The position numbers and the translations under genes were made by a program. Positions 8,584 to 56,946 of a stretch of DNA of 64,000 nt are shown here, piece after piece. This stretch comes from Macrostomum lignano. Its lineage: Eukaryota. Position 1 is the stretch's first letter. Each line of letters starts with the position of its first letter. The notes below the pieces were generated by a model that was not told the origin of the DNA, searched no databases, and saw only the letters and a list, made by a program, of their open reading frames with translations. The stretch spans positions 1 through 64,000 of the forward strand of contig NIVC01001827.1 of assembly GCA_002269645.1 (NCBI GenBank), read 5' to 3'.

Positions 8584-8814
8584 CTAGCTGAGAGCCGACA
8601 CGGCCTTCTTAGCCGCGTCCTCAAGGTTATCGGCGCTTAATATTGGCAGTCCGGAGTCCGCCAGCAGCCGCTTGGCCTCTTCAACGTTGGTGCCTTCAAG
8701 GCGGACAACCAGCGGCACGCGAAGGCTGATCTTCTTGGCCGCCTCGGTGATGCCCTTGGCGATGGTGGCGCAGTTCACGATGCCGCCGAATATGTTCACC
8801 AGGATGCAGCGCAC
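8584..8814 (-). CDS. SUCLG2: Succinyl-CoA ligase [GDP-forming] beta subunit, exon 4 of 4 (terminal)
   Basis: cccgcag|GTG acceptor; [22 protein letters not shown]...[16 protein letters not shown]...[10 protein letters not shown]; TAG at 8586-8584. Confidence 0.95.
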
Positions 8815-8869
8815 CTGCGGGACGGTGGGTTGCTTAGACTTATGAAGACTAACCGTCAGGGTATAGGGA

Positions 8870-9455
8870 GACAGACACCTGTGCACAGCTACAGCCTACA
8901 GGACCACAGGTACACAGCAGCCTACACTGAGAGACCTGTGCACAGGTACAGGTACACAGCAGCCTACACTGAGACACCTGTGCACAGCTACAGGTACACA
9001 GCAGCCTACACTGAGACACCTGTGCACAGCTACAGGTACACAGCAGCCTACATTGAGACACCTGTGCACAGCTACAGGTACACAGCAGCCTGAGACACCT
9101 GTGCACAGCTACAGGTACACAGCAGCCTGAGAAACCTGTGCACAGCTACAGGTACACAGCAGCCTGAGACACCTGTGCACAGCTACAGGTACACAGCAGC
9201 CTGAGAAACCTGTGCACAGCTACAGGTACACAGCAGCCTGAGACACCTGTGCACAGCTACAGGTACACAGCAGCCTGAGACACCTGTGCACAGCTACAGG
9301 TACACAGCAGCCTACACTGAGACACCTGTGCACAGCTACAGGTACACAGCAGCCTGAGACACCTGTGCACAGCTACAGGTACACAGCAGCCTACACTGAG
9401 ACACCTGTGTACAGCTACAGGTACACAGCAGCCTACACTGAGACACCTGTGTACT
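8870..9455. repeat. 42/37-bp minisatellite in SUCLG2 intron 3
   Basis: Unit GAGACACCTGTGCACAGCTACAGGTACACAGCAGCCT(ACACT), about 14-15 copies. Confidence 0.92.
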
Positions 9456-9520
9456 TAACTACAGGTACCCTGACACAACGGTAGAGATAAACCCAAAACA
9501 AGAATGTCTCAATGGTTCAC

Positions 9521-9865
9521 CTGCTGGTCAGACGTGAGGATGCGGAACGCGTGGTAAACCTGCTTCTCAGTGACTCCGCCGCCAACGTCAAGAAAGTTGG
9601 CTGGTCGGCCGCCGCACAGCTGCACAATGTCCATAGTGGCCATGGCCAGGCCAGCGCCGTTCACGAGGCAGCCAATGTTGCCGTCCATGCCGATGTAGTT
9701 CAAATTGTGCTGGCTGGCGTCCACCTCGCGCGGGTCGGACTCGGCGTGATCGTCCAGCTCGAAGATCGACTTCTGACGGAAGCTGGCGTTGTCGTCGAAG
9801 TTCAGCTTGGCGTCGAAGCAGACAACGCGACCGTCTGGCGTCTCGCCGAACGGGTTAATCTCCAC
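9521..9865 (-). CDS. SUCLG2: SUCLG2 exon 3 of 4
   Basis: cgccag|GTG acceptor, CAG|gtgaac donor, 345 nt, phase 0; [12 protein letters not shown]...[11 protein letters not shown]...[18 protein letters not shown]...[10 protein letters not shown]. Confidence 0.95.
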
Positions 9866-9939
9866 CTGGCGGCGGGAGTGTCGGAGTGGAAGGGTCAGAA
9901 AATGTCAGAATAGAGGAACAAGTATCAGGGAAATCGCTG

Positions 9940-10555
9940 TGTCAGCACCATAGGGACCCCAAGTCAGCACCAGGGGGAGTCTCAGTGTCAGCACCAGGGA
10001 ATTCCTAGCGTCAGAACCAGGGGAATCCGTGTGTCAGCACCAGGAGAAATCTCAGTGTCAGCTCCTGGGGAAATCCCAGTGCAAGCACCAAGGAAAATCC
10101 ATGTCAGCAACGGAAATTTCCGGTGGCAGCACCTAGGGAAATCCCAGTGTCAGCAACAGGGGAATCCCAGTATCAGCACCAGGAGAATCCCAGTTTTGGC
10201 GTAAGGGAAATCCCAGTGTCAGCACCAGGAAAATTTCAGTGTCGGTGTAAGGAAATCCCATTGTCAGCACCAGGGGAATCCGTGTGTCAGCACCAGGGGA
10301 ATCCGTGTGTCAGCACCAGGGGAATCCGTGTGTCAGCACCAGGAGAAATCTGTGTCAGCTCCTGGGGAAATCCCAGTGCAAGCACCCACCAAGGAAAATC
10401 CATGTCAGCAACGGAAATTTCCGGTGTCAGCACCTAGGGAAATCCCAGTGTCGCGTAAGGGAAATCCCAGTGTCAGCAACAGGGGAATCCCAGTGTCAGC
10501 ACCAGGGGAATCCCAGTGTCGTCGTAAGGAAAATCCCAGTGTCAGCACCAGGAGG
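9940..10555. repeat. Degenerate ~23-bp minisatellite (CAGCACCAGGGGAATCCCAGTGT)n in SUCLG2 intron 2
   Basis: Many diverged tandem units, with a longer block duplicated inside the array. Confidence 0.85.
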
Positions 10556-10972
10556 AGAACTCAAAATCATGTCCTGGACTATGCATGGCCAGTTCGAATC
10601 TTATTTTTAAGACACATTTTGTATTTTAAAAGCTCGAACTAGAGGTCTTGTTAACTCAAGAAAATAGTTGGTTGTGTACATAGTGCCCAAAAATGATTAG
10701 TTAAGTAAGCACAGTACCTGTATTGAACACATTTTCATTGATCTTTTTATTAGGGCATTTTCCTAATATTTAAACTATTAGTAGAGCATCAAATAACAGC
10801 TTAGCATAACTATGGCAAGTATTTTAATTGTATTCGTATAATTTATCGATTTGTCAGGTTTTGCCCTGGATATTACGCTATTGAATTTGATCGAGTCACC
10901 CTTCAAGGCAACCGCCGTGAGCGACACACATTGAGAGGCTTAAAAGTGCAAAACAAACGCATTTAAACGCAC

Positions 10973-11272
10973 CTGCGTACAGTCGACGGCCTGAAACAGG
11001 CTGTAGAGTTTCAGAATCTGTTCGGCGGCTTCCGCGCGACGCGGCCCAGAGAATCCCAGACAGTCGGCCATGCGATCAGCCTGCTCCCTAGTCAGGCCCT
11101 TGTTGATGTCCACAACCTCTTTGAAAATGGCGTCCGGACTTTTCGCGGCCACCTCTTCGATGTCCATGCCGCCCTGGGGACTGCCGACAACTACTGGGCC
11201 GCCGGACTCGCGGTCCATGAGGATGGCCAGGTAGGTCTCCCGGCTGATGTCCAGCGCTTCGGCTACCATCAC
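10973..11272 (-). CDS. SUCLG2: SUCLG2 exon 2 of 4
   Basis: caccag|GTG acceptor, CAG|gtgcgt donor, 300 nt; VMVAEALDISRETYLAILMDR...GSPQGGMDIEEVAA. Confidence 0.95.
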
Positions 11273-11414
11273 CTGGTGATTGCGGTGGCAATCATTAGCT
11301 CTGACCAAAATTAACCGTTAGGTAAACAGTCAATAATCTCAGTTTTATCTTAAAGTGTCAGGAGACTAATTTCCGTCCATCGACTAAGTGAAACATAGTA
11401 AAAACTCTCGCATC

Positions 11415-12025
11415 AGAGGAGGAAAGGGCGGATTGACATCAGGCATCAAAGGAGGGAAAGGGCGGATTGACATCAGGCATCAAAGGAGGGAAAGGGCAGA
11501 TTGACATCAGGCATCAAAGGAGGGAAAGGGCGGATTGACATCAGGCATCAAAGGAGGGAAAGGGCGGATTGACATCAGGCATCAAAGGAGGGAAAGGGCG
11601 GATTGACATCAGGCATCAAAGGAGGGAAAGGGCAGATTGACATCAGGCATCAAAGGAGGGAAAGGGCGGATTGACATCAGGCATCAAAGGAGGGAAAGGG
11701 CGGATTGACATCAGGCATCAAAGGAGGGAAAGGGCAGATTGACATCAGGCATCTTGATGCATCTTAGATTGACATCAGGCATCAAAGGAGGGAAAGGGCG
11801 GATTGACATCAGGCATCAAAGGAGGGAAAGGGCAGATTGACATCAGGCATCAAAGGAGGAAAAGGGCAGATTGATATCAGGCATCAAAGGAGGGAAAGGG
11901 CGGATTGACATCAGGCATCAAATGAGGGAAAGGGCAGATTGACATCAGGCATCAAAGGAGGAAAAGGGCAGATTGATATCAGGCATCAAAGGAGGGAAAG
12001 GGCGGATTGACATCAGACATTAAAG
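11415..12025. repeat. 34-bp minisatellite (GGAGGGAAAGGGCGGATTGACATCAGGCATCAAA)n in SUCLG2 intron 1
   Basis: About 18 near-identical copies. Confidence 0.93.
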
Positions 12026-12114
12026 AAGGGAAAGTGCTTTCAAGCCTTAAAACCGAAGGGTCGAGGAATAAGAGTTAGACGTAAACCTAGTACGACAAAT
12101 AACTGAGCGGTTAC

Positions 12115-12498
12115 CTTGGACACCATGACGCCTTCCTTTCCAGTCTGCTTAGTAACCAGCTTGTGCCCAAGCATGCTCTGAACCAGGCCAGCCACCTTAG
12201 CTGGCTCCTTAGTGAGATGGACGCCGCCTTTGAATCCGGTGTCAAAGACGCCTTTGCCCCGGCCGCCGGCCAATATCTGAGCTTTAATAACGTACTCGGC
12301 CGGTTTGAACGAGTCGGCCAATTTACTAGCCGACTGTGCATTGTCGGCAACTACAAAGCTTTGCACATTCACTCCGTAATCTTGCATCAGCTTCTTGCTC
12401 TGATATTCTTGCAGGTTCAACCAGCGCCGGCAGCAGCGGAACAGACCGCTGGCAGAGGCCGCCGATTGTCGGCGAGATGAAAGGCTTCGAGTAAGCAT
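12115..12498 (-). CDS. SUCLG2: SUCLG2 exon 1 of 4 (mitochondrial presequence plus ATP-grasp N-terminus); joined protein 419 aa
   Basis: ATG at 12498; Arg/Ser-rich leader; WLNLQEYQSKKLM (GDP-type) and KAQILAGGRGKG motifs; AAG|gtaacc donor. Exons 384+300+345+231 nt join in frame. Confidence 0.95.
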
Positions 12499-12911
12499 GG
12501 CGGTGCTTTGGTTTTGTTTATTTGTTAGTTAAACTGCAAATTATCAGCCGGGCGGCGCGCTTTGATGTTTACTTGTTTACTTTGACAATAAAACACAAAT
12601 AGATATCTATATAACTAGCTGATCAAATTTCTATGCATTAATAACATTCTACACTCACATGTATCATATCAAATCAGGAATTAGACACGTACGACTGTGT
12701 ATTAAATGGAAGCCTTAAAAATATTAAGGAAACGATGTGTGCTTTATTGTTTGACTGTGGCAGTAGCGGATATAAGATCGGCGAAATATTTCAATGATTG
12801 CAATTAAATTCACTCACTTAAAAATGCATCGCATTTAAACGCGTAACAAATCCTATTGTAGAAAACTCGCATTTACTAATCCGTAGAATGAGACTTAACA
12901 TTATAAGGGAC

Positions 12912-13661: not shown

Positions 13662-14642
13662 TCAGCCAATAGTCACGGAACCACTAAGCAAGTCTTTCAC
13701 AAGCACCAAATTCAGGCCGGACAGAACGTGAACGCCAACCGGAAAAGTTACGCCGCTAGGAATCAGCCGGAGCTCCTGGCCAGCTGGCAGAGGCCTGGTT
13801 GGCGGCCAGACCGGCACCACATAAGTCCAATTAAGCAGCCAAACGAAGGCATTTTTAATAAAGTCGTCCAGAATCTGCTGGCCGGCGCCGCCGCGCAATG
13901 CCGGATATTTTGATGCCGGCGGCGGCTGAAGCACGTTCCGCAGACTGGACTGCGTCAGCTCGTTGCAATGGACAAGTTTCTGGCCGAGATGGCACACCGG
14001 CCGCAGATGGCAGCTCCGGATGTTCTCGAAGCTGCACTGGCACTGCCGTTTGCGGAATACTTTAGGGGCGCGAGGATTCAATCGGAAGCCGACAATTTTG
14101 TCGCTATAGTCGAATCGGACGCATTTGCCGCCCCAGCCAGACTGGGCAGTGACAGTGTCAAAGTTCACCAGGGAAGGGTTCTCCGAGGACCGGCTGGTGT
14201 CAATAAGCATGCCGCGACAGGCGGCCACCTCGGTCAGCTGGCTAGATGAAAGGCGGGCGACGCCGCGGGCTATCTGATCAACGCATTCGGCCGACACTGG
14301 GAACGGCAAGCCGGGATCGGCGAGGCTCCGGCCAGCGGCGATTCGGTTGCTAAGCGCCGCAATGTACTCGATTTCGAATTTGTTACGCCAATGTACGCCT
14401 AGCAGGCCGAAATCTGAGACTAGAAATTTTAGCAGAGCTTTGAGCACGTTGTGCCGGCCGCGGTGACGAGTGGCTCGAGCGTCCGACAGCTGCAACGGAC
14501 GCTGCTGACGAGCTGGATGAGCCGAGGATGATGACAGGGGGGTAGGCCATTGTGACAGGCTGCGGCGGCAGCAGCAGGCGGTGACAGACCGCAGCGAGTT
14601 AAAGCCGATGCAACTGGGATACTGCTGAGGGATGGCAGACAT
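13662..14642 (-). CDS. Unidentified intronless ORF, 326 aa from the first ATG
   Basis: 981-nt non-repetitive, GC-rich open frame resembling neighbouring exons; AAA ATG T context at 14642; no family recognised. Confidence 0.55.
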   Translation of the reverse strand: MSAIPQQYPSCIGFNSLRSVTACCCRRSLSQWPTPLSSSSAHPARQQRPLQLSDARATRHRGRHNVLKALLKFLVSDFGLLGVHWRNKFEIEYIAALSNRIAAGRSLADPGLPFPVSAECVDQIARGVARLSSSQLTEVAACRGMLIDTSRSSENPSLVNFDTVTAQSGWGGKCVRFDYSDKIVGFRLNPRAPKVFRKRQCQCSFENIRSCHLRPVCHLGQKLVHCNELTQSSLRNVLQPPPASKYPALRGGAGQQILDDFIKNAFVWLLNWTYVVPVWPPTRPLPAGQELRLIPSGVTFPVGVHVLSGLNLVLVKDLLSGSVTIG

Positions 14643-18581: not shown

Positions 18582-19591
18582 TATTATGATTGCTATACAT
18601 GATTAATATATTAATAATATCATGTCATGAACTCTACTAGGCCTAGTTATTAGGGCCTAATATTATATTGCATTGGGTTGAGTTGGACCATTATTTGGGA
18701 CATGGACTTCAATCAAGTTAAGTATTCAAACAAAAATTCGATTGCCCCTTTACAGTCTGAGCGGTCATTAAACATGGTAAATATTGGATATGGCCGACTT
18801 GGCCGTATAATTTATACCCCAATAGAAATTATTAAAATCCGCTTTACCCTTCAGGCGTTAGGGCCTAGCCCTAGGGAGCACGATCTTGAAGTTCAACTAG
18901 AGGCGGCGCGGCGCGGCCTAACCGAAGAACCTGATTGATTCGAAGTGTGAAAGCAAGTTAGCAGACGCAAGTGCGACAATTTAAAAAAATTGGAACTGAA
19001 AACTTAAAAAACTTATTTTTGGTACGTTTCTTTTTGGTATGTTTTTTAAAATATAGTTTTATTTTAGACGTAAGTTTGCTATAATCGAAAAGGGTATATA
19101 TACAAAATTCTTTTTTTCTACGAAAAGTACCTCTGTCAACTTAGGGCTCTGCGGGTTTTAACAGCTTGTAATAACAATGTAAACGAATTTGTCAAAATCT
19201 ATGGTAGGCCTAAGGACAAGGTAAACCGACTTCGTCAAAAGAGTTGACTCAGAGTCAAGAGAGTTCATTGACTTTTTTTCGTTCACATTCAAGATTCAAT
19301 CAAGTTTACATGTTCAATTCAACTAGGCCTATGCTTATAGTCAGATTTATATAAACTTTGCTTTTAAGTAAATATATAATATATTAGGCAAATTTCTTGT
19401 CATTTTAAGTGCAAAGTGCCCACGAAGGCTTCATTTAAAAGTTCAGACATGCTTAAAAATGCGTAGCTGATATTTATGACTCAAAGACAAAAGAAGTCAA
19501 TGACAATGTCATATTTGTAATGTATCTTTATATCTATTTTAAAAGTAATCATATTTTGTACTTATTTCACATTGTGCATTATTTGTATTTG

Positions 19592-20364
19592 GGCAATCCT
19601 GAAGATTCCCGCGTTTAATTATTTTACGGAATTTTACCAGCACATGCTGGTTGATCACTGGCAGCAGGGTGTTGGCTGAACAGTCTGGCACAGGAACAAG
19701 AACGCATTGACGAGTGCCTCTCTCCACCATGCCCAGCACCCAGTGGCCTTCACGGTACTGCCCCTGGTGGTACTTGCGATACATGAATTTGGACTCATCG
19801 ATCTCAACGTCCACTCCGGGCCCACCAAGCTGTGTTGGGTGGTCAATGAGGTACTGGGCACAGATGTCACGGATGTAGTTGAACCAATCAATCACGGAGT
19901 ATTCGCTGGCTCATGTCTCTTCAACCACAGTGGACAGGCAGCTGTTCGTTGACCAGAAGTAGATCATGTCGATCAACTGAACAAGTGACAGGTGACTGCC
20001 TTGGAAGAAAGAGCCACACCGAATCGACTGATGTCGGCGGCAAGTCTTGCAGCTCCAGCAGACACCATCCACATAGTCTCGACCAGCCCGCCTTTGGAAT
20101 GACATAGGCATGTTGGGGCAGTGCTCACAGTCCATGCTGTTTCGCAGCAGCCCATACTTGGCCAGCCACTGGATGCCTGTCTCATCAGTTAGAGCCGTCA
20201 ATTCACGATGGTTGATGTTAAGTTCAGCTAGTTCAATAGTTGGTCTAACTTCTTAAGGATCCACGATTGTCTGGGGTGCTGGAGGTCGCCCTGCCATAAT
20301 TCCGTGGCTGAAATGTGCATAAAAATGCATAAAATAATTAAATGCGGGAATCTTCAGGATTGCC
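19592..20364 (-). mobile_element. Merlin (IS1595/IS1016-like) DNA transposon, internally deleted, 773 bp
   Basis: 37-bp TIRs GGCAATCCTGAAGATTCCCGC... with 2 mismatches; perfect 8-bp TSD TGTATTTG (19584-19591 and 20365-20372). Confidence 0.93.
19638..20297 (-). pseudogene. Merlin/ISXO2-like DDE transposase pseudogene, N-terminal ~220 codons
   Basis: MAGRPPAP start, CxxC..CxxC zinc ribbon, GGPGVDVEIDESKF..RKYHQG..WVLGMVERG..LVPVPD..TLLPVINQHVL; two in-frame stops (about 20252 and 19911); C-terminal catalytic half deleted. Confidence 0.9.
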
Positions 20365-30650: not shown

Positions 30651-32155
30651 CTCGCTTTATCACTCTATAACTTGGACGCGATAAAATAATACGGTATACT
30701 CGTATTTGCATAGTCCCAAACTGCAGCGTTAGCTGCACCGGCTGCAGTATTGACCAAAAATCCCTCAACTTTTATAAGGGAAACGGGGACACAGTGAGGA
30801 TATTGTAAAAAGGTGTAATCGTCGAGAGTGAGAGTTAATGCTGCTGCTGAGTCGATTTCTGCTCCAATTCCCAAACCCACGCGGTCCCCTCCCTTGTGGG
30901 ACAGTCGATAAAGCGGAGTTCTTCCCTTGTCTGTCTCCCTGCTCCCCACCGTGGGAGGTGCACTGCTGAGTCCGTGTAGCATTCAGGGGGGGGGAATTGT
31001 ATCTGTCATTGGGCGCCAAGTAGTGTGTGAATAAAACTGCGCCATGCAGTGAGAAATTTGAGCCTCCGATACGCTTGCATTCCCTACGCCTTAAATACAG
31101 TGTCTGTAATGCCGCTGTGCCGGCCTTAAAAACTTTCAATTCCAGTACCTGGGGCGGCCAACTCTCTGCAAACCTATGTCTGCGATCCCTTCCCTCTGTC
31201 TTCCCCTTCGCATGGATCAAATAGCCCGCATCTGTTATCAGAATGAAGCACGCCAGGGCTGAAACACTCTGAAAGTGGAATTGGAAGATCTTAACTGACA
31301 CACCTTGTTAAGTGGGGTGTCTAGGGTGCTCAAGCAATTGTTGAGGAGTTGATATTATCGAGATTAAAGATTAGTGGGCAGCGGAAGTGGCAAGGGGAGG
31401 ATTGGGATCGATAAAAGGTGCAGAAGGGAGAGTGAGTTGTTGATAAGCGAGACAATCTCCCATAAGATGGCCAAAAAGAGGCACAGAAAGTCGAAAAGGA
31501 TTTAAAATCATTTTCCAGAGCATAAAATATTTCAGAATCACTTAGAGACCCGCTGTATCAAAGTGCATTGGAATGGGCAATGGTGCAATGGGGCAGCTGG
31601 CTTACTCCAAATTTGGCAGGCAAATGTGTTGTAAAGTGGGGACAGTGTGCGTCAGTAAGCAGACTGTGCAGGGCCTCAGGGACCCCCAGAGGTAGTTGCA
31701 TAATTGATAGCGGCTAGTGCTTTACAAAGCTTGTATGGCCGGGAATGAACAGTAGATATACTTCACTCTTCTAATGCCCATCCCCCCTCTCTCTCAGCGT
31801 TTTCGCACGCGCAGGTGAGGTTGTACGCTCGTATACAAGTGTGGGAGCAGATGCCCAGCTGTTGGTCAGGCCATCTCCAGCCAGTCAGTCATTTTAGTCT
31901 TCAAAATTGATGATTGAGGGCCGGGAGCGGGCATGCCAAACTGATAAACAAAATGAGGACTGTGGAGAGGGGATTTGAGGCGGTCGGCCCAGCTCTGCGC
32001 CCTCCGATGCCAGCCAATGGGAATCAGTGGCCGCGGAGCTAGCAGTTGTCGGATCAGTCAAATTTCTATAAAAATGCGCTCGCGTCAACCTCTAAGCGAC
32101 AGTCTGGCGGCTTTGCGGCTATGGGAACTTAGACTGCAGGCCTCGGCTCTGAGAG

Positions 32156-34786
32156 ATGCACTGTGCGAGGGCCTCCGCACTGCTGCTGCTTCTGGCCGCT
32201 GCTCTGCTCTGCAGGAGGATCAGCGGCCTGGACGACTGCCGGCGGCTCTGTCCGGCCGCCTGTCCGGTCTGCAGCTTCCGCTACGCATTCGCCCAGCACC
32301 ATCTGGAGCTCGACTGCGCTTTTGCTGCCGACGCTGGCGCTCTGACACCTCTGACGAACTGCCTGGCTGGCGGCGACCTCAATGTGCTGATCATCCGCCG
32401 GGTGCGCTCGGCTGTCCGGCTGCTCAGCAAGCTGTCCGGCCTGCCGCGCCTCATCTACCTCAACTTGAGCCGCAACGACGTCACAGGCCTGCCAGCCGGC
32501 GCCTTCGCCGGATTCGCCGAGCTGCGCGACCTCGTCCTCGACGCCAACAGAATCGACAGCCTCGCCGACGGGTCGCTGGCGGCGCCTCGACTGCGCCGGC
32601 TCAGCTTGGCGCGCAACCGGCTGGCCAACATCTCGGCGGCGGCGTTTGGCAGCGCCGCCAATCAGCTGACGCGGATTGACCTCAGCCACAACCTGCTGGA
32701 CGAGCTGACGGACTGGCCTCTGCTGCTGGCTGAGCGGGCCGGACACCGGCCGGGCGTCAGGCGGAGCCTGCGGCTGCTGCTCGACCACAACCAGGTGCGC
32801 CAGTTCACGGCTGAGCGGCGGTGGCCGGCCTATATGCTGGGCCGTCTGGCGGATGCTGGGCTCAACATCAGCCTGGTTGGCAACGGCATCCGCCACCTCG
32901 GCGTCCTGCTCAGCGGCTGGCACCTGCTCGACAATCAGCCGCCGGCTCGGGCAGAAAACTGGCGACCACTGATCAGCAGCCTGGCCGGAAATCCCCTGCA
33001 CTGCGACTGCGAAGACTTCCGGCTTCTCTATCCCGACGGCGGGCGCACCTCCCCGCTGGCCGCACTGCTGGAAAGCTCAGCCGCGCTGCCCGAATGCGCC
33101 GAGCCCGCCGAGTTGCGCGGCCGTCGTCCACTGGTTGGCGCCAAGTTCCGGCCCGGCCTGGCGCCCGCGGAGCTCGTCTGCCAGCGCCAGCCCTGCCTTG
33201 ACTCGGCCGCCGGGCGCTGCCGCTGCACCGAAGAGCCGTGGCGCCAGGCGCTGTCTGTTGACTGTCGCGGAGTGACGCTTGACCGTCTGCCGCACTGGCG
33301 GGAGCTGCCGCCCCTCCCGGTCAGCGGCGGCTACGCCTACCGGTTCAACTTCAGCGGCGGCCGACTGGCCAGCCGCGGCCTGCCCGGCATGCCGAAGGTC
33401 TTCCGCGAGGCCGTCAGTCTCGACCTGAGCGGCACCGGACTCGAGGATCTGCCGGCCCGCTACCTGGCCAAGCTGCAGAGCCTGGAAGAGCTCATGCTGC
33501 ATCACAATCTGCTCACCCGGCTTGACCCGGAACTAGCCAGGACGTCGTTTCCTCGGCTTCGCCGGCTCCGCCTGGACAGAAACCCCTGGCACTGCGGCTG
33601 CAACTCCAGCTGGCTGCCCGGCTGGCTGCGCGCCCTGCGCCACACGCTACTGGCGCCTGACGATGTGCGCTGCGCCGAGCCGCCGCGCCTGCGCGACCGA
33701 TCGCTGCTGTCGCTGAGCTCCGCCGTCCTGTGCGACCTACCGGAGCCGCGGCCGGCAAACCGGGGCTACGACCGGCTGGCCCTCAGCTCGTCCGCCATCA
33801 GCGCCGCCCTGGCCCTGGCTACCATGGCCCTCTTGGCCGCCTTCTGCGGCCGGGTCAGCCTGTTCGCCAGCTGCGGCCTGCACCCCTTCGACAGGGACGA
33901 GTGCGCCGGCGAAGCCAAATCCTGCGACGCGTTTATCATGTTCCACCCAGACGATGCGGACTGGGTAGCCGCCGTGCTAGTAGAGAAGCTGCGCCGCCGG
34001 CCGCGGCCCTACGCCCTGTGCACCCACGACCGCACCCGGCTGCCCGGCGTCCCCGCCTACCCGGCCGTCTGGCACGCCGTGGAGTCCAGCAAGCGCGTCC
34101 TGGCGGTGGTCACCGACAGCTTCTTAGCCAGCGTGGATTCCTGCACAGACTACCAGCTGGCTGTTCACTTCCTGGCCGCGCGAGCCCGACCTCGCCGCGC
34201 CTGCCGCCTGGTGCACATCCTGTTCCCCGGTGTTCGCCGGCTCCCGCCCGGCCTGTTGGGCGTCGGCGGACGCGCCGCAGCAGCCCGCGCTGTTGCTCTG
34301 CGCTACGGCCGGCGCGGCTTCTGGCGCGAGCTGTTCTACCGGATGCCGCTGTGCGCAGCCAATGGGGTGGCCGCTGCTGCCGATGCAGCCGCCAGAGCCG
34401 TGGTGGATTCCTCGTCGCACTCGGCCTGCGCCAGCCCGCGCCGCCTGCTGTCCGCCTCCGCGGGCATCGTCGACAGCTTCAAGCAGGACGAGGACGAGAG
34501 CGGCGTCAATGAGAACCCGTGGAGTCAGTACGGTGGATTCGCAGCAAGCCGACAGCGCAGCAGCCACTGTCCGATGCACCGGCCACTACGACAGACTCTG
34601 ACGATGCCCAGACACTGCGGCAGCTTCTGTGGCGGCGTCAGCGCAGCGGCGGCGGCTGCGGCAGCGTCGGCAGCGTCTGGCGCCCAGCCCGGAGGCTCCT
34701 GCGCGACGCTCAGCACCTTTCGATCGCCGCAGCGTCGCTACGGAGATGAAGCGATGGACTTTGAGTTCAGCGAGGCCACGGTTTGA
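32156..34786 (+). CDS. Toll-like receptor, multiple-cysteine-cluster (protostome Toll-type), intronless, 876 aa
   Basis: Signal peptide; LRRNT; LRRs (LxxLxLxxN); LRRCT1 GNPLHCDC; second LRRNT CRC..VDC; LRRs; LRRCT2 RNPWHCGC; TM helix; TIR at about 33923-34348 with box1 CDAFIMF, box2 LCTHDRTRLPG and box3 FWRELFYRMP. Confidence 0.93.
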   Translation: MHCARASALLLLLAAALLCRRISGLDDCRRLCPAACPVCSFRYAFAQHHLELDCAFAADAGALTPLTNCLAGGDLNVLIIRRVRSAVRLLSKLSGLPRLIYLNLSRNDVTGLPAGAFAGFAELRDLVLDANRIDSLADGSLAAPRLRRLSLARNRLANISAAAFGSAANQLTRIDLSHNLLDELTDWPLLLAERAGHRPGVRRSLRLLLDHNQVRQFTAERRWPAYMLGRLADAGLNISLVGNGIRHLGVLLSGWHLLDNQPPARAENWRPLISSLAGNPLHCDCEDFRLLYPDGGRTSPLAALLESSAALPECAEPAELRGRRPLVGAKFRPGLAPAELVCQRQPCLDSAAGRCRCTEEPWRQALSVDCRGVTLDRLPHWRELPPLPVSGGYAYRFNFSGGRLASRGLPGMPKVFREAVSLDLSGTGLEDLPARYLAKLQSLEELMLHHNLLTRLDPELARTSFPRLRRLRLDRNPWHCGCNSSWLPGWLRALRHTLLAPDDVRCAEPPRLRDRSLLSLSSAVLCDLPEPRPANRGYDRLALSSSAISAALALATMALLAAFCGRVSLFASCGLHPFDRDECAGEAKSCDAFIMFHPDDADWVAAVLVEKLRRRPRPYALCTHDRTRLPGVPAYPAVWHAVESSKRVLAVVTDSFLASVDSCTDYQLAVHFLAARARPRRACRLVHILFPGVRRLPPGLLGVGGRAAAARAVALRYGRRGFWRELFYRMPLCAANGVAAAADAAARAVVDSSSHSACASPRRLLSASAGIVDSFKQDEDESGVNENPWSQYGGFAASRQRSSHCPMHRPLRQTLTMPRHCGSFCGGVSAAAAAAAASAASGAQPGGSCATLSTFRSPQRRYGDEAMDFEFSEATV

Positions 34787-47621: not shown

Positions 47622-47691
47622 CTTGGCCAGGTCCACAATGGAGTTCGCATTGTCGGTGAGTTTTCTTTGGTCTCGCTTTACTTTGCGAAGG
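47622..47691 (-). CDS. KCNN: SK/KCNN exon (end of the calmodulin-binding domain)
   Basis: ttccag|C acceptor, AAG|gtgagc donor; LRKVKRDQRKLTDNANSIVDLAK. Confidence 0.92.
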
Positions 47692-47764
47692 CTGGAAATA
47701 TGAATTATTGTGGTAGAGGTAGGCAAAATGAGAGAACTTACGCATATGGAACTGCTCAGAACAG

Positions 47765-48465
47765 GTAAAGTGAACTACTGAGGACAATGAAGGTGAACTA
47801 CTATGGAAAATGAGAGTGAACTACTATGGACAATGAGAGTGAACTACCGAGAACAATGAAGGTGAACTACTGAGGACAATGAGAGTGAACTACCGAGAAC
47901 GATGAAGGTGAACTACTATGGAAAATGAAAGTGAACTACTATGGACAATGAGAGTGAACTACTATGGACAATGAGAGTAAACTACTGCGGACAATGAGAG
48001 TGAACTACTGCAGACAATGAGAGTGAACTGCTATGGACAATGAGAGTGAACTACTATGGACAATGAGAGTGAACTACTGCAGACAATGAGAGCGAACTAC
48101 TGCGGACAGAGAGTGAACTACTATGGACAATGAGAGTGAACTACTGCGGACAGAGAGTGAACTACTGCAGACAATAAGAGCGAACTACTATGGACAATGA
48201 GAGTGAACTACCTTGGAAAATGATAGTGACCTACTATGGACAATGAGAGTGAACTACTATGGACAATGAGAGTGAACTACTGCAGACAATGAGAGTGAAC
48301 TACTATGGACAATGAGAGTGAACTACTGCAGACAATGAGAGTGAACTACTGCAGACAATGAGAGTGAACTACTGCAGACAATGAGAGTGAACTGCTATGG
48401 ACAATGAGAGTGAACTGCTATGGATAATGAGAGTGAACTACTGAGGACAATGAGCGTGAACTATG
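47765..48465. repeat. 23-bp minisatellite (GAGAGTGAACTACTATGGACAAT)n
   Basis: About 30 variant copies filling most of an SK intron. Confidence 0.92.
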
Positions 48466-48530
48466 GAAAGTGGCACACTAGCTGTCCCATATGTTAGTAC
48501 AGCAAATAAAAATAAATCAACTTCGCCCAC

Positions 48531-48658
48531 CTGTGAATAGCCTGTAAGAATTTGCGCTGGTGGGTTCGCACCTTTCCAGGGTTCACCCGTTTCACCAGTT
48601 TGGTGTACTTGTAGATCAGCCAGGTTTCGCGCAGCACATTTGCGGCGGAGTTTTTCAG
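48531..48658 (-). CDS. KCNN: SK/KCNN exon (calmodulin-binding domain)
   Basis: ttttcag|CTG acceptor, AG|gtgggc donor; [42 protein letters not shown]. Confidence 0.95.
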
Positions 48659-49116
48659 CTGAAAAAAGGAAGTATGGAAATCATTTTACAGCCCTGTGCG
48701 ACTAGTTTAAAGACCTCCAGTGAAGCTCGAGAGCGTTCGCTAGCAAAGCCCTCGTACTTGCATTCTCTGCCGGAAAATGCCCAAGCTACACTTTTATTTC
48801 CCGAGCCTCTATAGCATTCTACTTCTCCTTTGATGGCTGCCGCCCAGATCCCACTCTCTGACGCGACTCTCTCTCGGGCTCAACTCAACTCAGAATTGCC
48901 GGCCAAGCTGGGGGGGGGCAGGGGAGGGGGGGTCAAGGCCCACCCAGACAGGCCAACTGATGAGGCCTCCGTGAGTGGACAGAGTTGAGTCCTGGTGAGC
49001 GAAAAACCGGTCAAGCGTGATAGAAATCTGGCGCACAAATGCTAAAAGGAATATAGGAGACTAAAATGAAAAAAATCTAAAATGAAAGTCGTACTTTGGG
49101 TTAAAAAAGCAAAAAA

Positions 49117-49660
<544 letters not shown>

Positions 49661-50139
49661 GACCAGCTGAATTTCTTAGAAACCACATATCTCAAGCGCT
49701 GACCAGTCGCATCCCAGCTCAAGGGTGAGCTCGAAGGTCGCGAGCAGGGGACAGATCTGAGCAATCGACCTAATTTGAATTCCCCTCCCCGGGATGCTCA
49801 ATCAGATAAGCGCTGCTCCCCAACCTATCTGAGCATCAATAAAAACGCAGCCTCCAAAGATCCTGCAGTTGCTGCGGAAATTGGGTCGGTTTGTCTCATC
49901 GATGCCCAAGGAAATAGGTAAAACTCGCTCACTGTGCGCACTTTCTAAGAAAGTATGCCGCGAACATAAATTGCCAACTATCGCGGCCTCAGTTCAGCCC
50001 GCTAATACGCGATGGCCATTCATAATTCATAACGCATGACGCCTGACGTGTCCTAATTTCCTTAAATTCCGGGCAAATTTGAGACAGAATAAAGTGCGAG
50101 TAGAAAATGTTTGAGGAAAACTCTGACTAAAGCACTCAC

Positions 50140-50250
50140 CCGTTTAGTGAGCGCCGTGTCCATCATGAAGTTGTGCACGTGCTTCTCAGCTCTGGTGAGC
50201 TCCAGCTTCCTGGCGAAGACCGCAACTACCAGAGCAGTGCAGCAGGAGCC
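50140..50250 (-). CDS. KCNN: SK/KCNN exon (S6 to start of the CaM-binding domain)
   Basis: ccgcag|GGC acceptor, CGG|gtgagt donor; [37 protein letters not shown]. Confidence 0.95.
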
Positions 50251-50260
50251 CTGCGGAGCG

Positions 50261-50570
50261 ACGGAGTGAGGGATGCTGGCTCCACTCTTCCACATGGACA
50301 ATGGCGGAGTGAGGGGTGCTGGCTCCACTCTTCCACATGGACAATGGCGGAGTGAGGGGTGCTGGCTCCACACATCCATATGGGCAATGGCGGAGTGAGG
50401 GGTGCTGGCTCCACTCTTCCACATGGACAATGGCGGAGTGAGGGGTGCTGGCTCCACACATCCATATGGGCAATGGCGGAGTGAGGGGTGCTGGCTCCGC
50501 TCTTCTACATGGGCAATGGCGGAGTGAGGGGTGCTGGCTCTACTCTTCCACATGGGCAATGGCGGAGTGA
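50261..50570. repeat. 43-bp minisatellite abutting an SK splice acceptor
   Basis: Unit GGCGGAGTGAGGGGTGCTGGCTCCACTCTTCCACATGGACAAT, about 7 copies. Confidence 0.9.
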
Positions 50571-51049
50571 GACATTGAAATTCAGAAAAAGATATCGCAG
50601 GATGTCAGGTTTGCTTGATGAAATAAATTAGGATAAAATCAAAAGTTCCTGGGCTCAGACTGGACCGAACACACTGATACTCCATCAGACTGTTGGCTGC
50701 AAAGCCGTAGCACGATGAGAGCATCCTGACATGCAACCCATACAATCAGGGATGGTGAATCTTCTACAGTCCAAGAAGAGACTATACTATAAAATTTTTC
50801 TCATCAATCAAGTTTCTTAACAACTTAAGCTTTGCAGATGTTTTCTTGGGCTAAGCTTTCAATAGCGGACCAATGACCCTGAGATAAGAGATTTTCATCC
50901 GTCTTGATCCACAGGCTTAAGTGAGTACGAGACAGCAGCTGGATGATGGAGCTGAAAGGATAAATTTTGGTGCAAAAGTACGATATAGCAAACAAGAATA
51001 GCACTTTCCAGCATGTTGATGAAGCCAGTGTAAACCTGTTTAAAGTGGC

Positions 51050-51375
51050 TAAAGGAATAGAATGCATAGCTAATCCAGCCTTCATTAACAAAGGAATATA
51101 ATTCATTGCTAATCTAGCCTACATTAATGGTGGAATAGAATGGATTGCTAATCTAGCCTATATTAATGGTGGAATAGAATGGATTGCTAATCTAGCCTAC
51201 ATTAATGATGGAATAGAATGGATTGCTAATCTAGCCTATACTAATGGTGGAATAGAATGGATTGCTAATCTAGCCTATATTAATGGTGGAATAGAATGGA
51301 TTGCTAATCTAGCCTACATTAATGGTGGAATAGAATGGATTGCTAATCTAGCCTACATTAATGGTGGAATAGAAT
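51050..51375. repeat. 39-bp minisatellite (GGTGGAATAGAATGGATTGCTAATCTAGCCTACATTAAT)n
   Basis: About 8 copies. Confidence 0.9.
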
Positions 51376-52271
51376 TGGTGGCGCAACGGGACTGGAACGG
51401 GAGCAGAAATGAGAAAGACGGAAAGAATATGCAAAGTCGATGCAAATCATTTGCACTGCTCAGGCGAATTAGCAAGCCTAAAAATGTCAAATACGCGCGT
51501 AGCTACGAAGACTCGGAACCCTACAACACTGCAGTGGTGCTTGAAGGCTGCTGCATGGTCTTAGCATGATAAATTGATAAGCCAATGACCTCCGTGAGCT
51601 TTGATCATTCAAAGCCGACTTATCTTTTAAAATAATAAATTAAAGGCGATGAATGCAAGTACCTTCCGAGCGAACCGAACCCTAAACTAATTTCAATGCG
51701 TACTGTAGTTTTAATTTTACACTCGGCTTTTGACGGCAGAGGTTCATTTACTCGCCGGTCAGCAATCCAAGTTGAGCAGAGTCGGCCGCGGTTAGTACGC
51801 ATCTGAATACTGAATAAGAGCTACTGAAGTATTTAGCCACGTTGCGTTTAATAGGCCGCAGTCATAGGCCTACTTCGCTAGCATAACACACAGCAACTAG
51901 TCGTATGTTGTGAATTAATTTCGCCTTTGATCGATAATAGTTAAGCGCACTAGTATTGCGCAGGCCTATCCGCTATCCATTAAGTGGGATGGAAGACATC
52001 TGATAGCCCTCAGCGCTCGTTTGCTTTGTGAAATCTTTTGCTCTGCGCCAGATCTGACCTGGGCGAGCACCCGCCTCAACTTCACGGCGGAGACAAAGCC
52101 GGTTTATTCCCGGCCACCCACGCCGGGCGCTGGGGGGATTTTTCTCCCCTTTGTCTGTCCCAGCCTTAGATCCGGCATTCAGAGAGAGCCAGCGGTGCTT
52201 GATTACAATCTTTGCCATCTTTGCGCTGCTCAGTCAGACCGCGTTGAATAGAAATAGGCTTGTATATATAG

Positions 52272-52853
<582 letters not shown>

Positions 52854-53759
52854 CTCTAAGACAGACAGACCAGGCAGAGTCTCTATGCCAAGCACGCTCA
52901 ACAATCAGAAGTCGGTCAGTCACGAACCGTCAACAGCACTGATCCAACCCTGTAACTAGCTCGGATGAGTACCTACCATACGATCACCTCCTCACTCCCT
53001 GGGCAATGCCGGACAAGTCGTAGATCTCGGAGCTGTTAGAAAGCACAGGCAGAGACGCTGCAGTGACCTCCCTCCCTTTGCGCCACCGCCCCAGGGGCAG
53101 CTGTCCCGGCCGGCTGCCCCACCCCACGCGATGTCACGGCTCGCCGAAGCCTAATGAGCCGCCGCTGCCGCTACCTGGCATCCGAGAGACTCTCTCTGTT
53201 TTTCTAACAACGGCTAAAATTTTTCTATCGCAGTCTATCTAACCGCGAATTGGTGATGTACTTTTAATCCGGGATGTCCTCAGTCACTGATAAATGCCCC
53301 TCATCATCAATATCTACTAATACTGTAGGTCTTAGTTTCACTACTATTGAGTCTAATCCTTTGGATTATAGACCTTCTGCTAATGAGACCTGTGAGCTAC
53401 GTAAAGCGTGTGCACTTAGGAGTGTACTCAGGATCTTCAAGTTCTCCCCCATTTTTTCTTCCCCTTTTTTCTTCAAAAATTCGACTTATCGAACTAGCGC
53501 TACGTCGGCAGTACTATTAATTTAATCCCTGGTTGACTGCTCCCTCTTTGAGCGCAGGCGGTCTAGCAAAGGCAGATGACATTTTTTCTCTCGAGCAGTA
53601 CATGCTAATAGTTCTTGTGCGTCTGTCCAATTGGCTGGATTCTTGAAAAATGGGTTCTCGATTTTTTTTAAGAAATCAATTATTAATATTTCACTTCAGT
53701 CAGTTTAGATATTTCAATACAAATATTATAGACTTTCGGCATGCAGATATTCCTGATAC

Positions 53760-54622
53760 TCTCTCAGATTGTACAGTTCCCATAGATCACAACTTTCTCA
53801 GTCTCTCAGATTGTACAGTTCCCATAGATAACAACTTTCTCAGTCTCTCAGATTGTACAGTTCCCATAGATCACAAGTTGCTCAGTGTCTCAGATTGTAC
53901 AGTTCCCATAGATAACAACTTTATCAGTCTCTCAGATTATACAGTTCCCATAGATAACAACTTTATCAGTCTCTCAGATTGTACAGTTCCCATAGATAAC
54001 AACTTTCTCAGTCTCTCAGATTGTACAGTTCCCATAGATAACAACTTTCTCAGTCTCTCAGATTGTACAGTTCCCATAGATAACAACTTTATCAGTCTCT
54101 CAGATTGTACAGTTCCCATAGATAACAACTTTATCAGTCTCTCAGATTGTACAGTTCCCATAGATAACAACTTGCTCAGTCTCTCAGATTGTACAGTTCC
54201 CATAGATCACAAGTTGCTCAGTGTCTCAGATTGTACAGTTCCCATAGATAACAACTTTATCAGTCTCTCAGATTGTACAGTTCCCATAGATAACAACTTT
54301 ATCAGTCTCTCAGATTGTACAGTTCCCATAGATAACAACTTTATCAGTCTCTCAGATTGTACAGTTCCCATAGATAACAACTTTATCAGTCTCTCAGATT
54401 GTACAGTCCCCATAGATCACAACTTGCTCAGTCTCTCAGATTGTACAGTTCCCATAGATAACAACTTGCTCAGTCTCTCAGATTGTACAGTTCCCATAGA
54501 TCACAAGTTGCTCAGTCTCTCAGATTGTACAGTTCCCATAGATAACAACTTTATCAGTCTCTCAGATTGTACAGTTCCCATAGATCACAACTTGCTCAGT
54601 CTCTCAGATTGTACAGTTCCCA
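53760..54622. repeat. 42-bp minisatellite (CTCTCAGATTGTACAGTTCCCATAGATAACAACTTTATCAGT)n
   Basis: About 20 copies; explains the repetitive 361-aa ORF. Confidence 0.95.
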
Positions 54623-55224
54623 TAATGCCAGGGCATGCAAATTCAATATTCGAAGCTTTAAAATCTACACCAGAAAGGGGAAATTCTTTTCTGACTGCCC
54701 GGTGGTGCAGGACAAACGCCCCCGCCCTACTATAGAATAGATTGGCCCACCTCTATACATGCAAGTCAGAATTGCCAGGCAATTAGATAAAAAACTGGCT
54801 GCATCAAATGCCGACATGCGAGCGAAGGAGCCCAGAGGCCGGCTCTCATCCGGGGAACAATGACAAATGAAGCTATAGACCCGACCGGCCAGTCCATCAT
54901 AGGGCCACTTTCATAGCTACTTCGGCCAAGCGAGACGGCAAAGGAAGGCCTGTGCGTGCCGCTTTATTATCCAGATCGTTAATCTCCCTGTGTCCTTCTT
55001 CCCCACGTCTGTCTTGCCGGCAGTTAATTGAGCAAGTAGAGCTCTATTCGTATCAAAGACAGATGCAGCCGAGCTCCATTCCTAGCTAACCTCAGCCCAG
55101 CCTGTCGTCTGCTTTCTGTCATCTGTGGGACAATCGCTATTTGACGATTGAAGGCGGAGAGAAGCAGTCGATTACCTGATGAACGTGGGTGGTGATGAAC
55201 ATTCGACTCGCAAATGTACCAAGA

Positions 55225-55828
55225 TAGCAGCGGATTTAAGCATTTTCAAGAGGGCGGATAGCAGCGGATTTAAGCATTTTCAAGAGGGCGGATAGCAGCG
55301 GATTTAAGCATTTTCAAGAGGGCGGATAGCAGCGGATTTAAGCATTTTCAAGAGGGCGGATAGCAGCGGATTTAAGCATTTTCAAGAGGGCGGATAGCAG
55401 CGGGTTTCCGGATTTTTAAGGGGGCGGATAGCAGCGGGTTTCCTGATTTTTAAGGGGGCGGATAGCAGCGGGTTTCCTGATTTTTAAGGGGGCGGATAGC
55501 AGGGGTTTCCGGATTTTTAAGGAGTTTCCAGATTTTTAAGGGCGGATAGCAGCGAATTTCCCGAGTTTTAAGGGGCGGATAGCAGCGGATTTCCGGATTT
55601 TTAAGGGGCGGATAGCAGTGGGTCTACGGATTTTAAAGGGGGTGGATAGCAGCGGATTTCCAGATTTTTAGGGGGGTGGATAGCAGCGGATTTCCGAATT
55701 TTTAAGGGGGCGGATAGCAGCGGATTTCCGAATTTTTAAGGGGGCGGATAGCAGCGGGTTTCCAGATATTCAAGAGAGCGGATAGCAGCGGATTTCCGAA
55801 TTTTTAAGGGAGCGGATAGCAGCGGGTT
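55225..55828. repeat. 33/34-bp minisatellite with two sub-variants (AGCAGCGG...GGGCGGAT)
   Basis: Five homogeneous 34-mers followed by diverged units; ends about 20 nt from an SK donor. Confidence 0.9.
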
Positions 55829-55847
55829 TTCAGAGTCCCAGTCTCAC

Positions 55848-56401
55848 CATGACGCCAGTGGCGATGGAGATGGCGCGGCCGCAGTAAGTATTAGGCACAA
55901 TATCGCCGTAGCCAATGCTCAGAAAGGTGATGCCGATGAGCCACATTGAGTTGAGTATGTTGCCATGCAGCAGATCGTGGTAGCTCTCGCAGGCTCGCAT
56001 AAGCCAGCTGGCACTAATCCACAGGGTGAGGATGAACACCAGCAGCACGGTGCCGGGAACATCGTCATGAGGGTCTTCAACACGAAGCGCGTATTGAAGG
56101 AGATTCGATTCAGCGCGCCAATGCTGCGCGATCCGGCGTCAGTGAACATTTTCGAGTGCAGCAGCATGACCCGGAAGATCAAGTAGAGCCGCAGGAACAT
56201 CGGCAGCGTCAGGAACAGGTCGATTGGCACGTCCACCGTCTTGCTGCTGCGATCGTGCGGTACGTAAGTTGTCCAGCTGAATGTCAGCGCGTTCGGCAGC
56301 GGGTGGATGGCGCAGACGCAGACTTCGGCTACCATTTGGCCGACGCGGCGACTGCTGATGGCGACGCGCCAGTCCTCGATGCAGTTGTCAATGCTGAATA
56401 G
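55848..56401 (-). CDS. KCNN: SK/KCNN exon (S3-S5, pore, start of S6) with an apparent 1-nt deletion
   Basis: ccaacag|CTA acceptor, ATG|gtgaga donor; [14 protein letters not shown]...CAIHP...[35 protein letters not shown]...[13 protein letters not shown]; 554 nt, frame changes at about 56055. Confidence 0.93.
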
Positions 56402-56680
56402 CTGTTGGAGCGGGTTAAAGGAGGCGGTCAATGAACGCATCGATTGCAACTTGGAGAGCTGTCTGATGTATGGAAGCAACAGCGACACCTGCAATATCCC
56501 ATAACTCCCTCTGTCAGGCAGGTAAGCAATGTTCTAGCAAACTAATTAGGCAGCCCCAGGACTTCGACAACCGGGTTTTTGTGGTCTCAAATGAAATGGC
56601 CTCCAATCACAAAGAGAGATCCTAGCTATGGGAGGTGAGATACAGTGGAAAAGTCGTAGGGTCATCTTCTTCAGTATGAT

Positions 56681-56946
56681 GGGGCTGTAGCCTAGTGGTT
56701 AGAGCGTCGGAATCGCGACTGAAAGGTCGGGGGTTCGATTCTGGATCCACTCGGAACAATTTGTGTCCTTGAGCAAGACACTTAACTCTGCATTGCTTCA
56801 GTTCACCCAGCTGTAAAATAGGTGCTAGCATTAGCTGGGGTAATTGAGGGCGTGTGTGACGACCCCCCAGTCCTTGGATTGAACAGCCGTACGCAGCCTT
56901 TAGGTAGCTGCAATAGCAGGTGTAATAAATTCTTAATTATTATTAT
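56681..56946 (+). mobile_element. tRNA-derived CORE-like SINE (family B), full length
   Basis: Head GGGGCTGTAGCCTAGTGGTTAGAGCG...GGTTCGATTC; MIR/CORE-like GTGTCCTTGAGCAAGACACTTAAC...CAGCTGTAAAAT; (ATT)n tail. Confidence 0.85.

Follow-up and report, generated by a model that had tools for sequence, protein, structure and literature searches.

The genome of the flatworm Macrostomum lignano, whose phylum is reported to have lost all Toll-like receptors, carries an intact and unannotated gene encoding a Toll-type receptor. The analysed window, a stretch of 64,000 nucleotides, corresponds to bases 1-64000 of contig NIVC01001827.1 (GCA_002269645.1) and contains an uninterrupted open reading frame of 876 codons with an ATG start. 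Its product has a signal peptide, two LRR blocks each closed by a cysteine cap, one TM helix, a complete TIR domain and a predicted-disordered tail. The comparison of two copies of the gene indicates purifying selection, although there is no expression evidence and the placement in a TLR subfamily is tentative. These results support the preliminary description of the locus, in which the ORF was interpreted as a Toll receptor of the Drosophila Toll type, retained in Macrostomum or a relative. The suggestion of an overlooked Toll pathway, made in the same description, remains an inference.

Domain architecture of the receptor

The protein fulfils the criteria of Brennan & Gilmore 2018 and Orus-Alcalde 2021 for a Toll-like receptor, i.e., a TIR domain, a TM helix and at least one LRR in one protein. 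The Pfam search gave LRR_8 (7.5e-25, three stretches), LRR_4 (3.1e-18, four stretches) and TIR (24.5 bits, cut-off 21.3), as well as a weak LRRCT hit. The NCBIfam scan scored only irrelevant bacterial LRR families, and the Rfam scan of the window gave no matches. The Kyte-Doolittle hydropathy analysis showed only two hydrophobic segments, one N-terminal and one internal, and all five N-glycosylation sequons lie in the ectodomain, which is consistent with a type-I topology. About 10 LxxLxLxxN motifs were found. Among the solved structures, TLR3 is the best relative across the LRRCT-TM-TIR part. The positions of the identified features are presented in the table.

Features of the TLR gene and its neighbourhood in the window (positions refer to the 64,000-nt window; aa, residues of the encoded protein)
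Feature	Position	Strand	Details
Putative core promoter	32014..32074	+	CCAAT (32014-32018) and TATAAAAA (32067-32074), 82-89 nt upstream of the ATG; motif matches only
TLR coding sequence	32156..34786	+	Single exon, 876 codons plus stop
Signal peptide	32156..32227	+	aa 1-24; hydropathy peak at aa 1-26 followed by RRISG|LDD; N-terminal helix in the AF2 model
LRRNT cysteine cap and first LRR block	32228..32989	+	aa 25-278; Cys 28, 32, 36, 39, 54, 69; LRR motifs at aa 99, 123, 146, 171 and 231; Pfam LRR_8 and LRR_4; pLDDT above 90
Internal LRRCT directly followed by a second LRRNT	32990..33310	+	LRRCT NPLHCDC (aa 279-285), Cys 283, 285, 314, 342; LRRNT Cys 347, 355, 357, 370
Second LRR block and membrane-proximal LRRCT	33311..33733	+	NPWHCGC (aa 476-482), Cys 480, 482, 506, 526; Pfam LRR_8, weak Pfam LRRCT hit at aa 504-522 (E=0.036); TLR3 alignment across aa 406-664
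Transmembrane helix	33776..33880	+	aa 541 to about 575; AF2 helix 537-564
Juxtamembrane motif	33881..33913	+	HPFDRDECAGE (aa 576-586)
TIR domain	33917..34360	+	aa 588-735; boxes 1-3 and BB-loop Pro-Gly
Low-complexity, predicted-disordered C-terminal tail	34406..34783	+	aa 751-876; pLDDT 27-40; no homologue aligns here
SUCLG2	8584..12522	-	Four coding exons
Hypothetical protein PAA63622.1	21815..23831	+	303 aa; synteny anchor for the second TLR copy

The cysteines form four clusters, and the internal LRRCT-LRRNT junction is the feature that makes the protein a multiple-cysteine-cluster (mcc, P-type) TLR. This assignment is supported by the cysteine positions, by their conservation in the family consensus and by the structural matches. 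However, Pfam did not score the first LRRCT cap and scored the second only weakly. The best Foldseek matches of the predicted ectodomain are Drosophila Toll-Spaetzle, C. elegans TOL-1 and Aedes Toll5A.

All three TIR boxes were identified in the alignment with the family: box 1 CDAFIMFH, box 2 HDRTRLPG with the Pro-Gly retained, and box 3 GFWRELFYRMP. It is worth noting that the TIR domain is divergent, as the Pfam score is only 3 bits above the threshold, box 1 differs from the YD.F.SYS of the family and box 2 reads DRTRLPG in place of RDF.PG. Nevertheless, the cytoplasmic region alone matches solved TIR domains by sequence (TLR15/TLR2 4.5e-9, MyD88 1.6e-5), and its AF2 model (pLDDT 87, pTM 0.83) shows a predicted fold of five strands and five helices. 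The top 40 Foldseek hits of this model are all animal TIRs (TM 0.63-0.79), the closest being TLR15/1/6/2, IL-1RAcP, MyD88 and Hydra TRR-2.

Genomic context and conservation of the locus

The SUCLG2 protein spliced from the window is identical in 419/419 residues to M. lignano PAA55798.1, and the window is 100% identical to NIVC01001827.1 positions 1-22522. The window also has the genome style noted in the preliminary description: 31 tandem-repeat arrays cover 33% of it, and exon GC3 is 56-83%. The GC3 of the TLR ORF (83%, against 56-82% in SUCLG2 exons) and its amino-acid bias match those of neighbouring host genes. The neighbour previously called dysbindin was not confirmed as such, since it has no Pfam hit and is annotated only as a hypothetical protein.

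No gene is called over the ORF in the stretches of GenBank annotation examined for two contigs, and the exact product is not on record. The gene is also missing from the M. lignano protein sets in the collection searched, which would be consistent with low or conditional expression. The only polyadenylation-like signal within 1.2 kb of the stop is an ATTAAA about 900 nt downstream.

The same ORF was found in the same synteny on a second, independently assembled contig of 498 kb, NIVC01000640.1, beside PAA79318.1. The two copies differ by 17 substitutions (0.65%) and no indels in 2.6 kb. Of these substitutions, 10 are synonymous and seven nonsynonymous, which gives a pN/pS of 0.26 (binomial p=0.0056). 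The flanks differ by about 2.2% and carry many indels, with seven gap openings in about 2.3 kb. However, the selection test rests on only 17 differences between very similar copies, which may be alleles or recent homeologues. A third copy of the locus is on NIVC01002706.1, although the retrieved stretch ends about 10 kb short of the TLR position.

Relationship to known receptors

The word-indexed homologue search returned only LRR-driven hits and no close relative, while in the exhaustive search of 1.84 billion cluster representatives no protein exceeded about 32% full-length identity. Collinear alignments at 27-32% identity were obtained to TLRs of 650-1000 aa, e.g., aa 26-672 against the TLR labelled P0187. 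The nearest neighbours in the distance trees are compact TLRs of about 650-760 aa, such as Paralvinella palmiformis KAK2163172.1 and many unnamed environmental eukaryote contigs. They share both cysteine-cluster junctions, the ectodomain motifs (W-P, FTN...W, N.I.H..D...GW) and the juxtamembrane motif HPFDRDEC.GE, and the two members examined are also single-exon genes. The Macrostomum protein, however, sits on a long branch, and the bootstrap support in the NJ trees (40-63%) was too weak to assign a subfamily. Moreover, it carries a 125-aa disordered tail that the others lack and has an extreme Ala/Arg/Leu content driven by GC3. Most of the closest relatives are unnamed ENA, JGI or Logan contigs, and only one annelid and several insect Tolls carry names.

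Drosophila Toll and Aedes Toll5A (PDB 4lxr/4lxs, 7b1b-d) have the same type-I topology with an internal LRRCT-LRRNT cluster, a membrane-proximal LRRCT, one TM helix and a C-terminal TIR, and they match the ectodomain model with TM about 0.4 and rmsd 6 A over 497 columns. Their ectodomain is much longer, with more than 20 LRRs in about 1,030-1,100 aa against about 12 LRRs in 876 aa, the identity is only about 25%, and insect Toll lacks the HPFDRDEC motif. C. elegans TOL-1 (PDB 8suf) is likewise an mcc-type TLR, in an animal with a reduced TLR set, but it is larger and acts mainly in neurons and development, and sequence similarity is confined to the generic LRR and TIR parts. The TIR domains of the vertebrate TLR1 family (TLR15, TLR1, TLR2, TLR6 and TLR10) and of MyD88 are the best matches for the cytoplasmic domain by sequence (4.5e-9 to 2e-5) and by fold (TM 0.63-0.76), with the BB-loop Pro-Gly conserved, although the identity is 17-25% and vertebrate TLRs have single-cysteine-cluster ectodomains. 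Within the phylum, 20 Smed-TIR proteins, Smed-MyD88 and Smed-SARM are known from planarians. They are plausible signalling partners, but none of the planarian proteins has LRRs joined to a TIR, while in the Macrostomum protein LRR, TM and TIR are encoded in one exon.

Origin, role and significance of the gene

The most likely explanation, in which we have fairly high confidence, is that the ORF is a genuine, selectively maintained nuclear gene of M. lignano, retained from the bilaterian TLR repertoire and missed by annotation. Its mechanism can only be inferred from the family. The two capped LRR solenoids would bind an extracellular ligand, either a Spaetzle-like cystine-knot protein, as for Drosophila Toll, or a microbial molecule directly, and ligand binding would bring two receptors together. 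The paired TIR domains would then recruit a TIR adaptor of the MyD88 type through their BB-loop surfaces and signal through TRAF6/TAK1 to MAP kinases or a Rel factor. MyD88, SARM, TRAF3/6, TAK1/TAB1, p38 and JNK are reported in planarians. A role in development or the nervous system, e.g., in cell adhesion or axon and synapse guidance as for TOL-1 or Drosophila Toll-6/7/8, possibly with signalling through SARM instead of MyD88, seems less likely but possible. The structural matches include TOL-1 bound to the latrophilin lectin domain and the developmental Toll receptors, animals with a single mcc TLR such as nematodes and tardigrades are listed by Orus-Alcalde 2021, and no immune data exist for this gene. 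Nothing in the sequence separates the two roles, although the BB-loop Pro-Gly used in MyD88-type signalling is retained, and this alternative concerns the role of the gene, not its identity.

It is unlikely that the ORF is a transcriptionally silent relic, recently duplicated with its locus and not yet decayed. No gene model was seen at either locus in the annotation examined, and at such low divergence the intactness of both copies is weak evidence by itself. However, the synonymous excess is significant, indels are confined to the flanks, a 2.6-kb ORF at 70% GC would not survive long without selection, all family-conserved cysteines and TIR boxes are intact, and CCAAT and TATA motifs sit upstream. 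A secondary, lineage-specific fusion of an LRR-only gene with a TIR-only gene appears still more doubtful. The same question was raised for the nemertodermatid TLR, the branch is long and the bootstrap support for subfamily placement is weak, but single collinear alignments run from LRRNT to TIR against many TLRs, and the internal LRRCT-LRRNT junction, the ectodomain motifs and the juxtamembrane motif are shared with the compact family, including its annelid member. An assembly artefact, a contaminant or a recent horizontal transfer was not supported and is very improbable. The assembly does contain small errors, such as an apparent 1-nt frameshift in the SK-channel exon, yet two independent contigs of 358 kb and 498 kb carry the ORF between the same host genes, it is flanked by the typical minisatellites of the host, its composition is host-like, and no close donor exists among the representatives searched.

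The protein belongs to a thoroughly known family, and its expression and function are unproven. Full-text searches found no paper reporting a Macrostomum or flatworm TLR. Several surveys and reviews state that Platyhelminthes have no TLRs. Orus-Alcalde 2021 lists 0 TLRs for M. lignano and infers an early loss in flatworms, a 2021 review says the same, and this distribution was still being cited in 2026. The 2021 survey used hmmsearch, which works on protein sequences, so it would have missed an unannotated gene. An intact, constrained TLR in M. lignano contradicts that data point and moves the inferred loss to after Macrostomorpha split off. It also shows that absence calls made from predicted proteomes can be annotation artefacts, especially for single-exon, GC-rich, weakly expressed genes in repeat-rich genomes. 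It is somewhat more probable than not that flatworms did not lose Toll-like receptors at the base of the phylum, and that Macrostomorpha keeps a selectively maintained mcc TLR descended from an old, compact subfamily shared with annelids. On this reading, the loss seen in triclads, cestodes and trematodes happened later, inside Rhabditophora, and M. lignano would have a working TLR-to-TIR-adaptor axis that surveys based on gene models overlooked.

Architecture and predicted fold of the receptor

The ATG-initiated ORF of 876 codons noted in the preliminary description was recovered exactly as described, and it is the only long, non-repetitive ORF in the neighbourhood. It stands out in composition, with 70% GC and 83% GC3 against about 48-50% GC in the immediate flanks. 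The Pfam search showed LRR_8 (7.5e-25), LRR_4 (3.1e-18), TIR (24.5 bits, gathering score 21.3) and a weak LRRCT hit, while the best solved relative is TLR3, aligned continuously across the last LRRs, LRRCT, TM and TIR (aa 406-664). The hydropathy analysis revealed only two hydrophobic segments, aa 1-24 and 541-575. The 33 cysteines include four tight clusters, at 28-69, 283-342, 347-370 and 480-526, with NPLHCDC at aa 279-285 and NPWHCGC at aa 476-482, and all five N-glycosylation sequons are N-terminal to the TM helix. The preliminary description of an LRR-TM-TIR receptor was thus confirmed in every structural detail.

The AlphaFold2 model, built on 33 aligned relatives, has both LRR blocks above pLDDT 90 and shows a single helix at 537-564, a cytoplasmic domain with five strands alternating with five helices and a disordered tail from residue 751. 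Based on Foldseek, the whole model is closest to a TLR5 full-length model, the Drosophila Toll-Spaetzle ectodomain (TM about 0.4, rmsd 6 A over 497 columns), C. elegans TOL-1 and Aedes Toll5A. Apart from TLR5, these top matches are multiple-cysteine-cluster (mcc) Tolls, and the other vertebrate TLRs rank below them.

The TIR is divergent. As its Pfam score is marginal, the cytoplasmic part was analysed separately. By sequence, it matches the solved TIR domains of TLR15/TLR2 (4.5e-9), MyD88 (1.6e-5), TLR7, IL-1RAcP, TLR6 and Hydra TRR-2. The TIR-only model has a pLDDT of 87 and a pTM of 0.83, and its top 40 structural matches are all animal receptor or adaptor TIRs, with TM 0.63-0.79. In the family alignment, box 1 (CDAFIMFH), box 2 (HDRTRLPG, in which Pro-Gly is retained) and box 3 (GFWRELFYRMP) are in register. 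The protein therefore fulfils the published operational definition of a TLR (TIR + TM + at least one LRR) and that of the mcc subclass (at least two LRRCTs).

Genomic context and annotation of the locus

The neighbouring SUCLG2 gene was modelled from the genomic sequence with only four coding exons and three introns, and all junctions are CAG|GTG in phase 0. The 419-aa product corresponds to PAA55798.1 / A0A1I8H5J7 of Macrostomum lignano, and two further M. lignano paralogues belong to the same 90% cluster. The GenBank model for this contig (PAA63620.1, 427 aa, 'partial') starts 8 codons upstream of the ATG used in our model. The window is 100% identical to positions 1-22522 of NIVC01001827.1 (GCA_002269645.1), a 358-kb contig, so the assignment to Macrostomum or a relative in the preliminary description was correct. 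The locus exists in at least three copies in the assembly, on NIVC01001827.1, NIVC01002706.1 and NIVC01000640.1, with long aligned blocks about 92-98% identical at the DNA level and SUCLG2 products within 90% of each other.

Coordinates of the features identified at the Macrostomum lignano locus, its copies and the closest relatives of the receptor (window positions unless an accession is given)
Feature	Position	Strand	Remarks
TLR ORF	32156..34786	+	876 codons
SUCLG2	8584-12522	-	exons 12498-12115, 11272-10973, 9865-9521 and 8814-8584
Tandem-repeat arrays of the three SUCLG2 introns	8927-9434, 9926-10554, 11410-12034		one array in each intron
Hypothetical protein, single exon	13662-14618	-	318 aa
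Fragment with sub-threshold ISXO2-like DDE transposase match	19539-19895	-	118-aa ORF; AT-rich stretch (31-37% GC at 16-22 kb)
Hypothetical protein PAA63622.1	21815-23831	+	303 aa
SK (KCNN-type) channel gene	47622-59994	-	frameshift near 56040-56065
ORF with Integrase_H2C2 domain	63392-64000	+	runs off the window end
Locus copy	NIVC01002706.1:52257-77001
Locus copy	NIVC01000640.1:104896-127130
Compact TLR relative	GCA_029979725.1 JARPNT010002399.1:1077-3290		single exon, about 737 aa
Compact TLR relative	ENA ERZ25767047 ctg38470:3001-5211		single exon, about 737 aa

The two annotated hypothetical proteins have no Pfam domain, and both are conserved at the other locus copies. One of them, PAA63622.1, had been called dysbindin in the preliminary description, a label that finds no Pfam support; our four-exon model of this gene gives 335 aa and is 88% identical to the annotated product, so the two models differ. 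In total, 31 different tandem-repeat arrays, mostly minisatellites with units of 20-43 bp, cover 21.4 kb (33%) of the window, and array lengths differ between the locus copies. The ORF with the Integrase_H2C2 zinc-binding domain (6.2e-14) is probably the pol gene of an LTR retroelement and has the same high GC3 as host genes, while the ISXO2-like match (20.4 bits, cut-off 27) is likely a decayed DNA-transposon fragment.

In the annotation of NIVC01001827.1, no gene is called between the 303-aa neighbour and position 33,831, a stretch that includes the first 1.7 kb of the ORF. Likewise, NIVC01000640.1 has no gene model over its complete copy of the ORF. The exact product is not on record, and a word-indexed search returned no close relative. 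The exhaustive phmmer search of 1.84 billion cluster representatives found nothing better than 27-32% identity over the full length; as this collection contains GenBank and UniProt proteins of M. lignano, the TLR is absent from those public protein sets. Orus-Alcalde et al. 2021 listed 0 TLRs for M. lignano and used this to argue for an early loss in flatworms. However, it is worth noting that their method was hmmsearch with a TIR profile, which compares a profile with protein sequences, so the survey could only see predicted proteins. A 2021 review of planarian immunity repeats that Platyhelminthes lack TLR orthologues, and a 2026 paper still takes TLR distribution from the 2021 survey, although the same paper recovers a TLR in a nemertodermatid, in a clade previously called TLR-less. 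No report of a Macrostomum or flatworm TLR was found in full-text searches of open-access papers and bioRxiv preprints.

Sequence constraint and origin of the gene

The copy of the locus on NIVC01000640.1, a 498-kb contig, carries the complete 876-codon ORF 7 kb downstream of the same 303-aa neighbour. The two ORFs differ at 17 sites with no indels, ten differences being synonymous and seven nonsynonymous (pS 1.4%, pN 0.36%, pN/pS 0.26), and the chance of at least 10 synonymous changes out of 17 under neutrality is 0.0056. In the same alignment block, the non-coding flanks carry about 2.2% mismatches and 7 gap openings, and other flanking blocks are 96-98% identical with many indels. These results show that the gene is kept under purifying selection, although the test relies on only 17 differences and is not accompanied by expression data. 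The upstream CCAAT and TATA elements are only motif matches, and no clear poly(A) signal lies near the stop, the only one being ATTAAA about 900 nt downstream.

Contamination, chimeric joining and recent transfer are effectively excluded, as the ORF is found beside the same neighbour in both contigs and its GC3 (83%) lies at the top of the range of the neighbouring host exons (56-82%). The assembly may not be free of small errors: in the SK channel gene, whose conceptual translation hits Pfam SK_channel, Ion_trans_2 and CaMBD, the S5/pore exon needs one extra base in a CCCGG run (...TLMTMFP|GTVLLVF...) to stay in frame, which is either a homopolymer assembly error or a real frameshift in this copy. 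This makes a clean 2.6-kb frame in two copies more telling. A new LRR-TIR fusion is also argued against, because the alignment with the best full-length relatives, compact TLRs of 650-1,000 aa, shares features that generic LRR similarity cannot explain: the internal LRRCT-LRRNT junction, the ectodomain motifs W-P, FTN...W and N.I.H..D...GW, and the juxtamembrane motif HPFDRDEC.GE, which insect Tolls lack. This argues for descent from an existing TLR lineage. The only named member of these relatives is from the annelid Paralvinella palmiformis, while the rest are unnamed environmental eukaryote contigs. The closest full-length relatives, from unidentified eukaryotic assemblies, are also single-exon genes and share the HPFDRDEC.GE motif, and we have not seen this compact TLR subfamily described under that signature. 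Distance trees placed the Macrostomum protein on a long branch beside this family, but the bootstrap support is only 40-63%, and the subfamily assignment is therefore tentative.

Inferred signalling and significance for flatworms

The sequence encodes a secreted-pathway type-I receptor with two capped LRR solenoids outside the cell and a complete TIR inside. Its mechanism is inferred from the family: ligand-induced dimerisation, TIR-TIR recruitment of a MyD88- or SARM-type adaptor through the BB loop, and signalling to TRAF6/TAK1 and MAP kinases or a Rel factor. MyD88, SARM, TRAF3/6, TAK1/TAB1, p38 and JNK are reported in planarians. The sequence itself does not separate an immune from a developmental role, and we regard a developmental or neuronal function as possible but rather unlikely.

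The interpretation of the ORF as a Toll receptor retained in a lineage thought to have lost them is supported. The family itself is well known, and what is new is the presence of a member in a phylum where that family is published as absent, which corrects a specific data point used to infer early TLR loss in flatworms.
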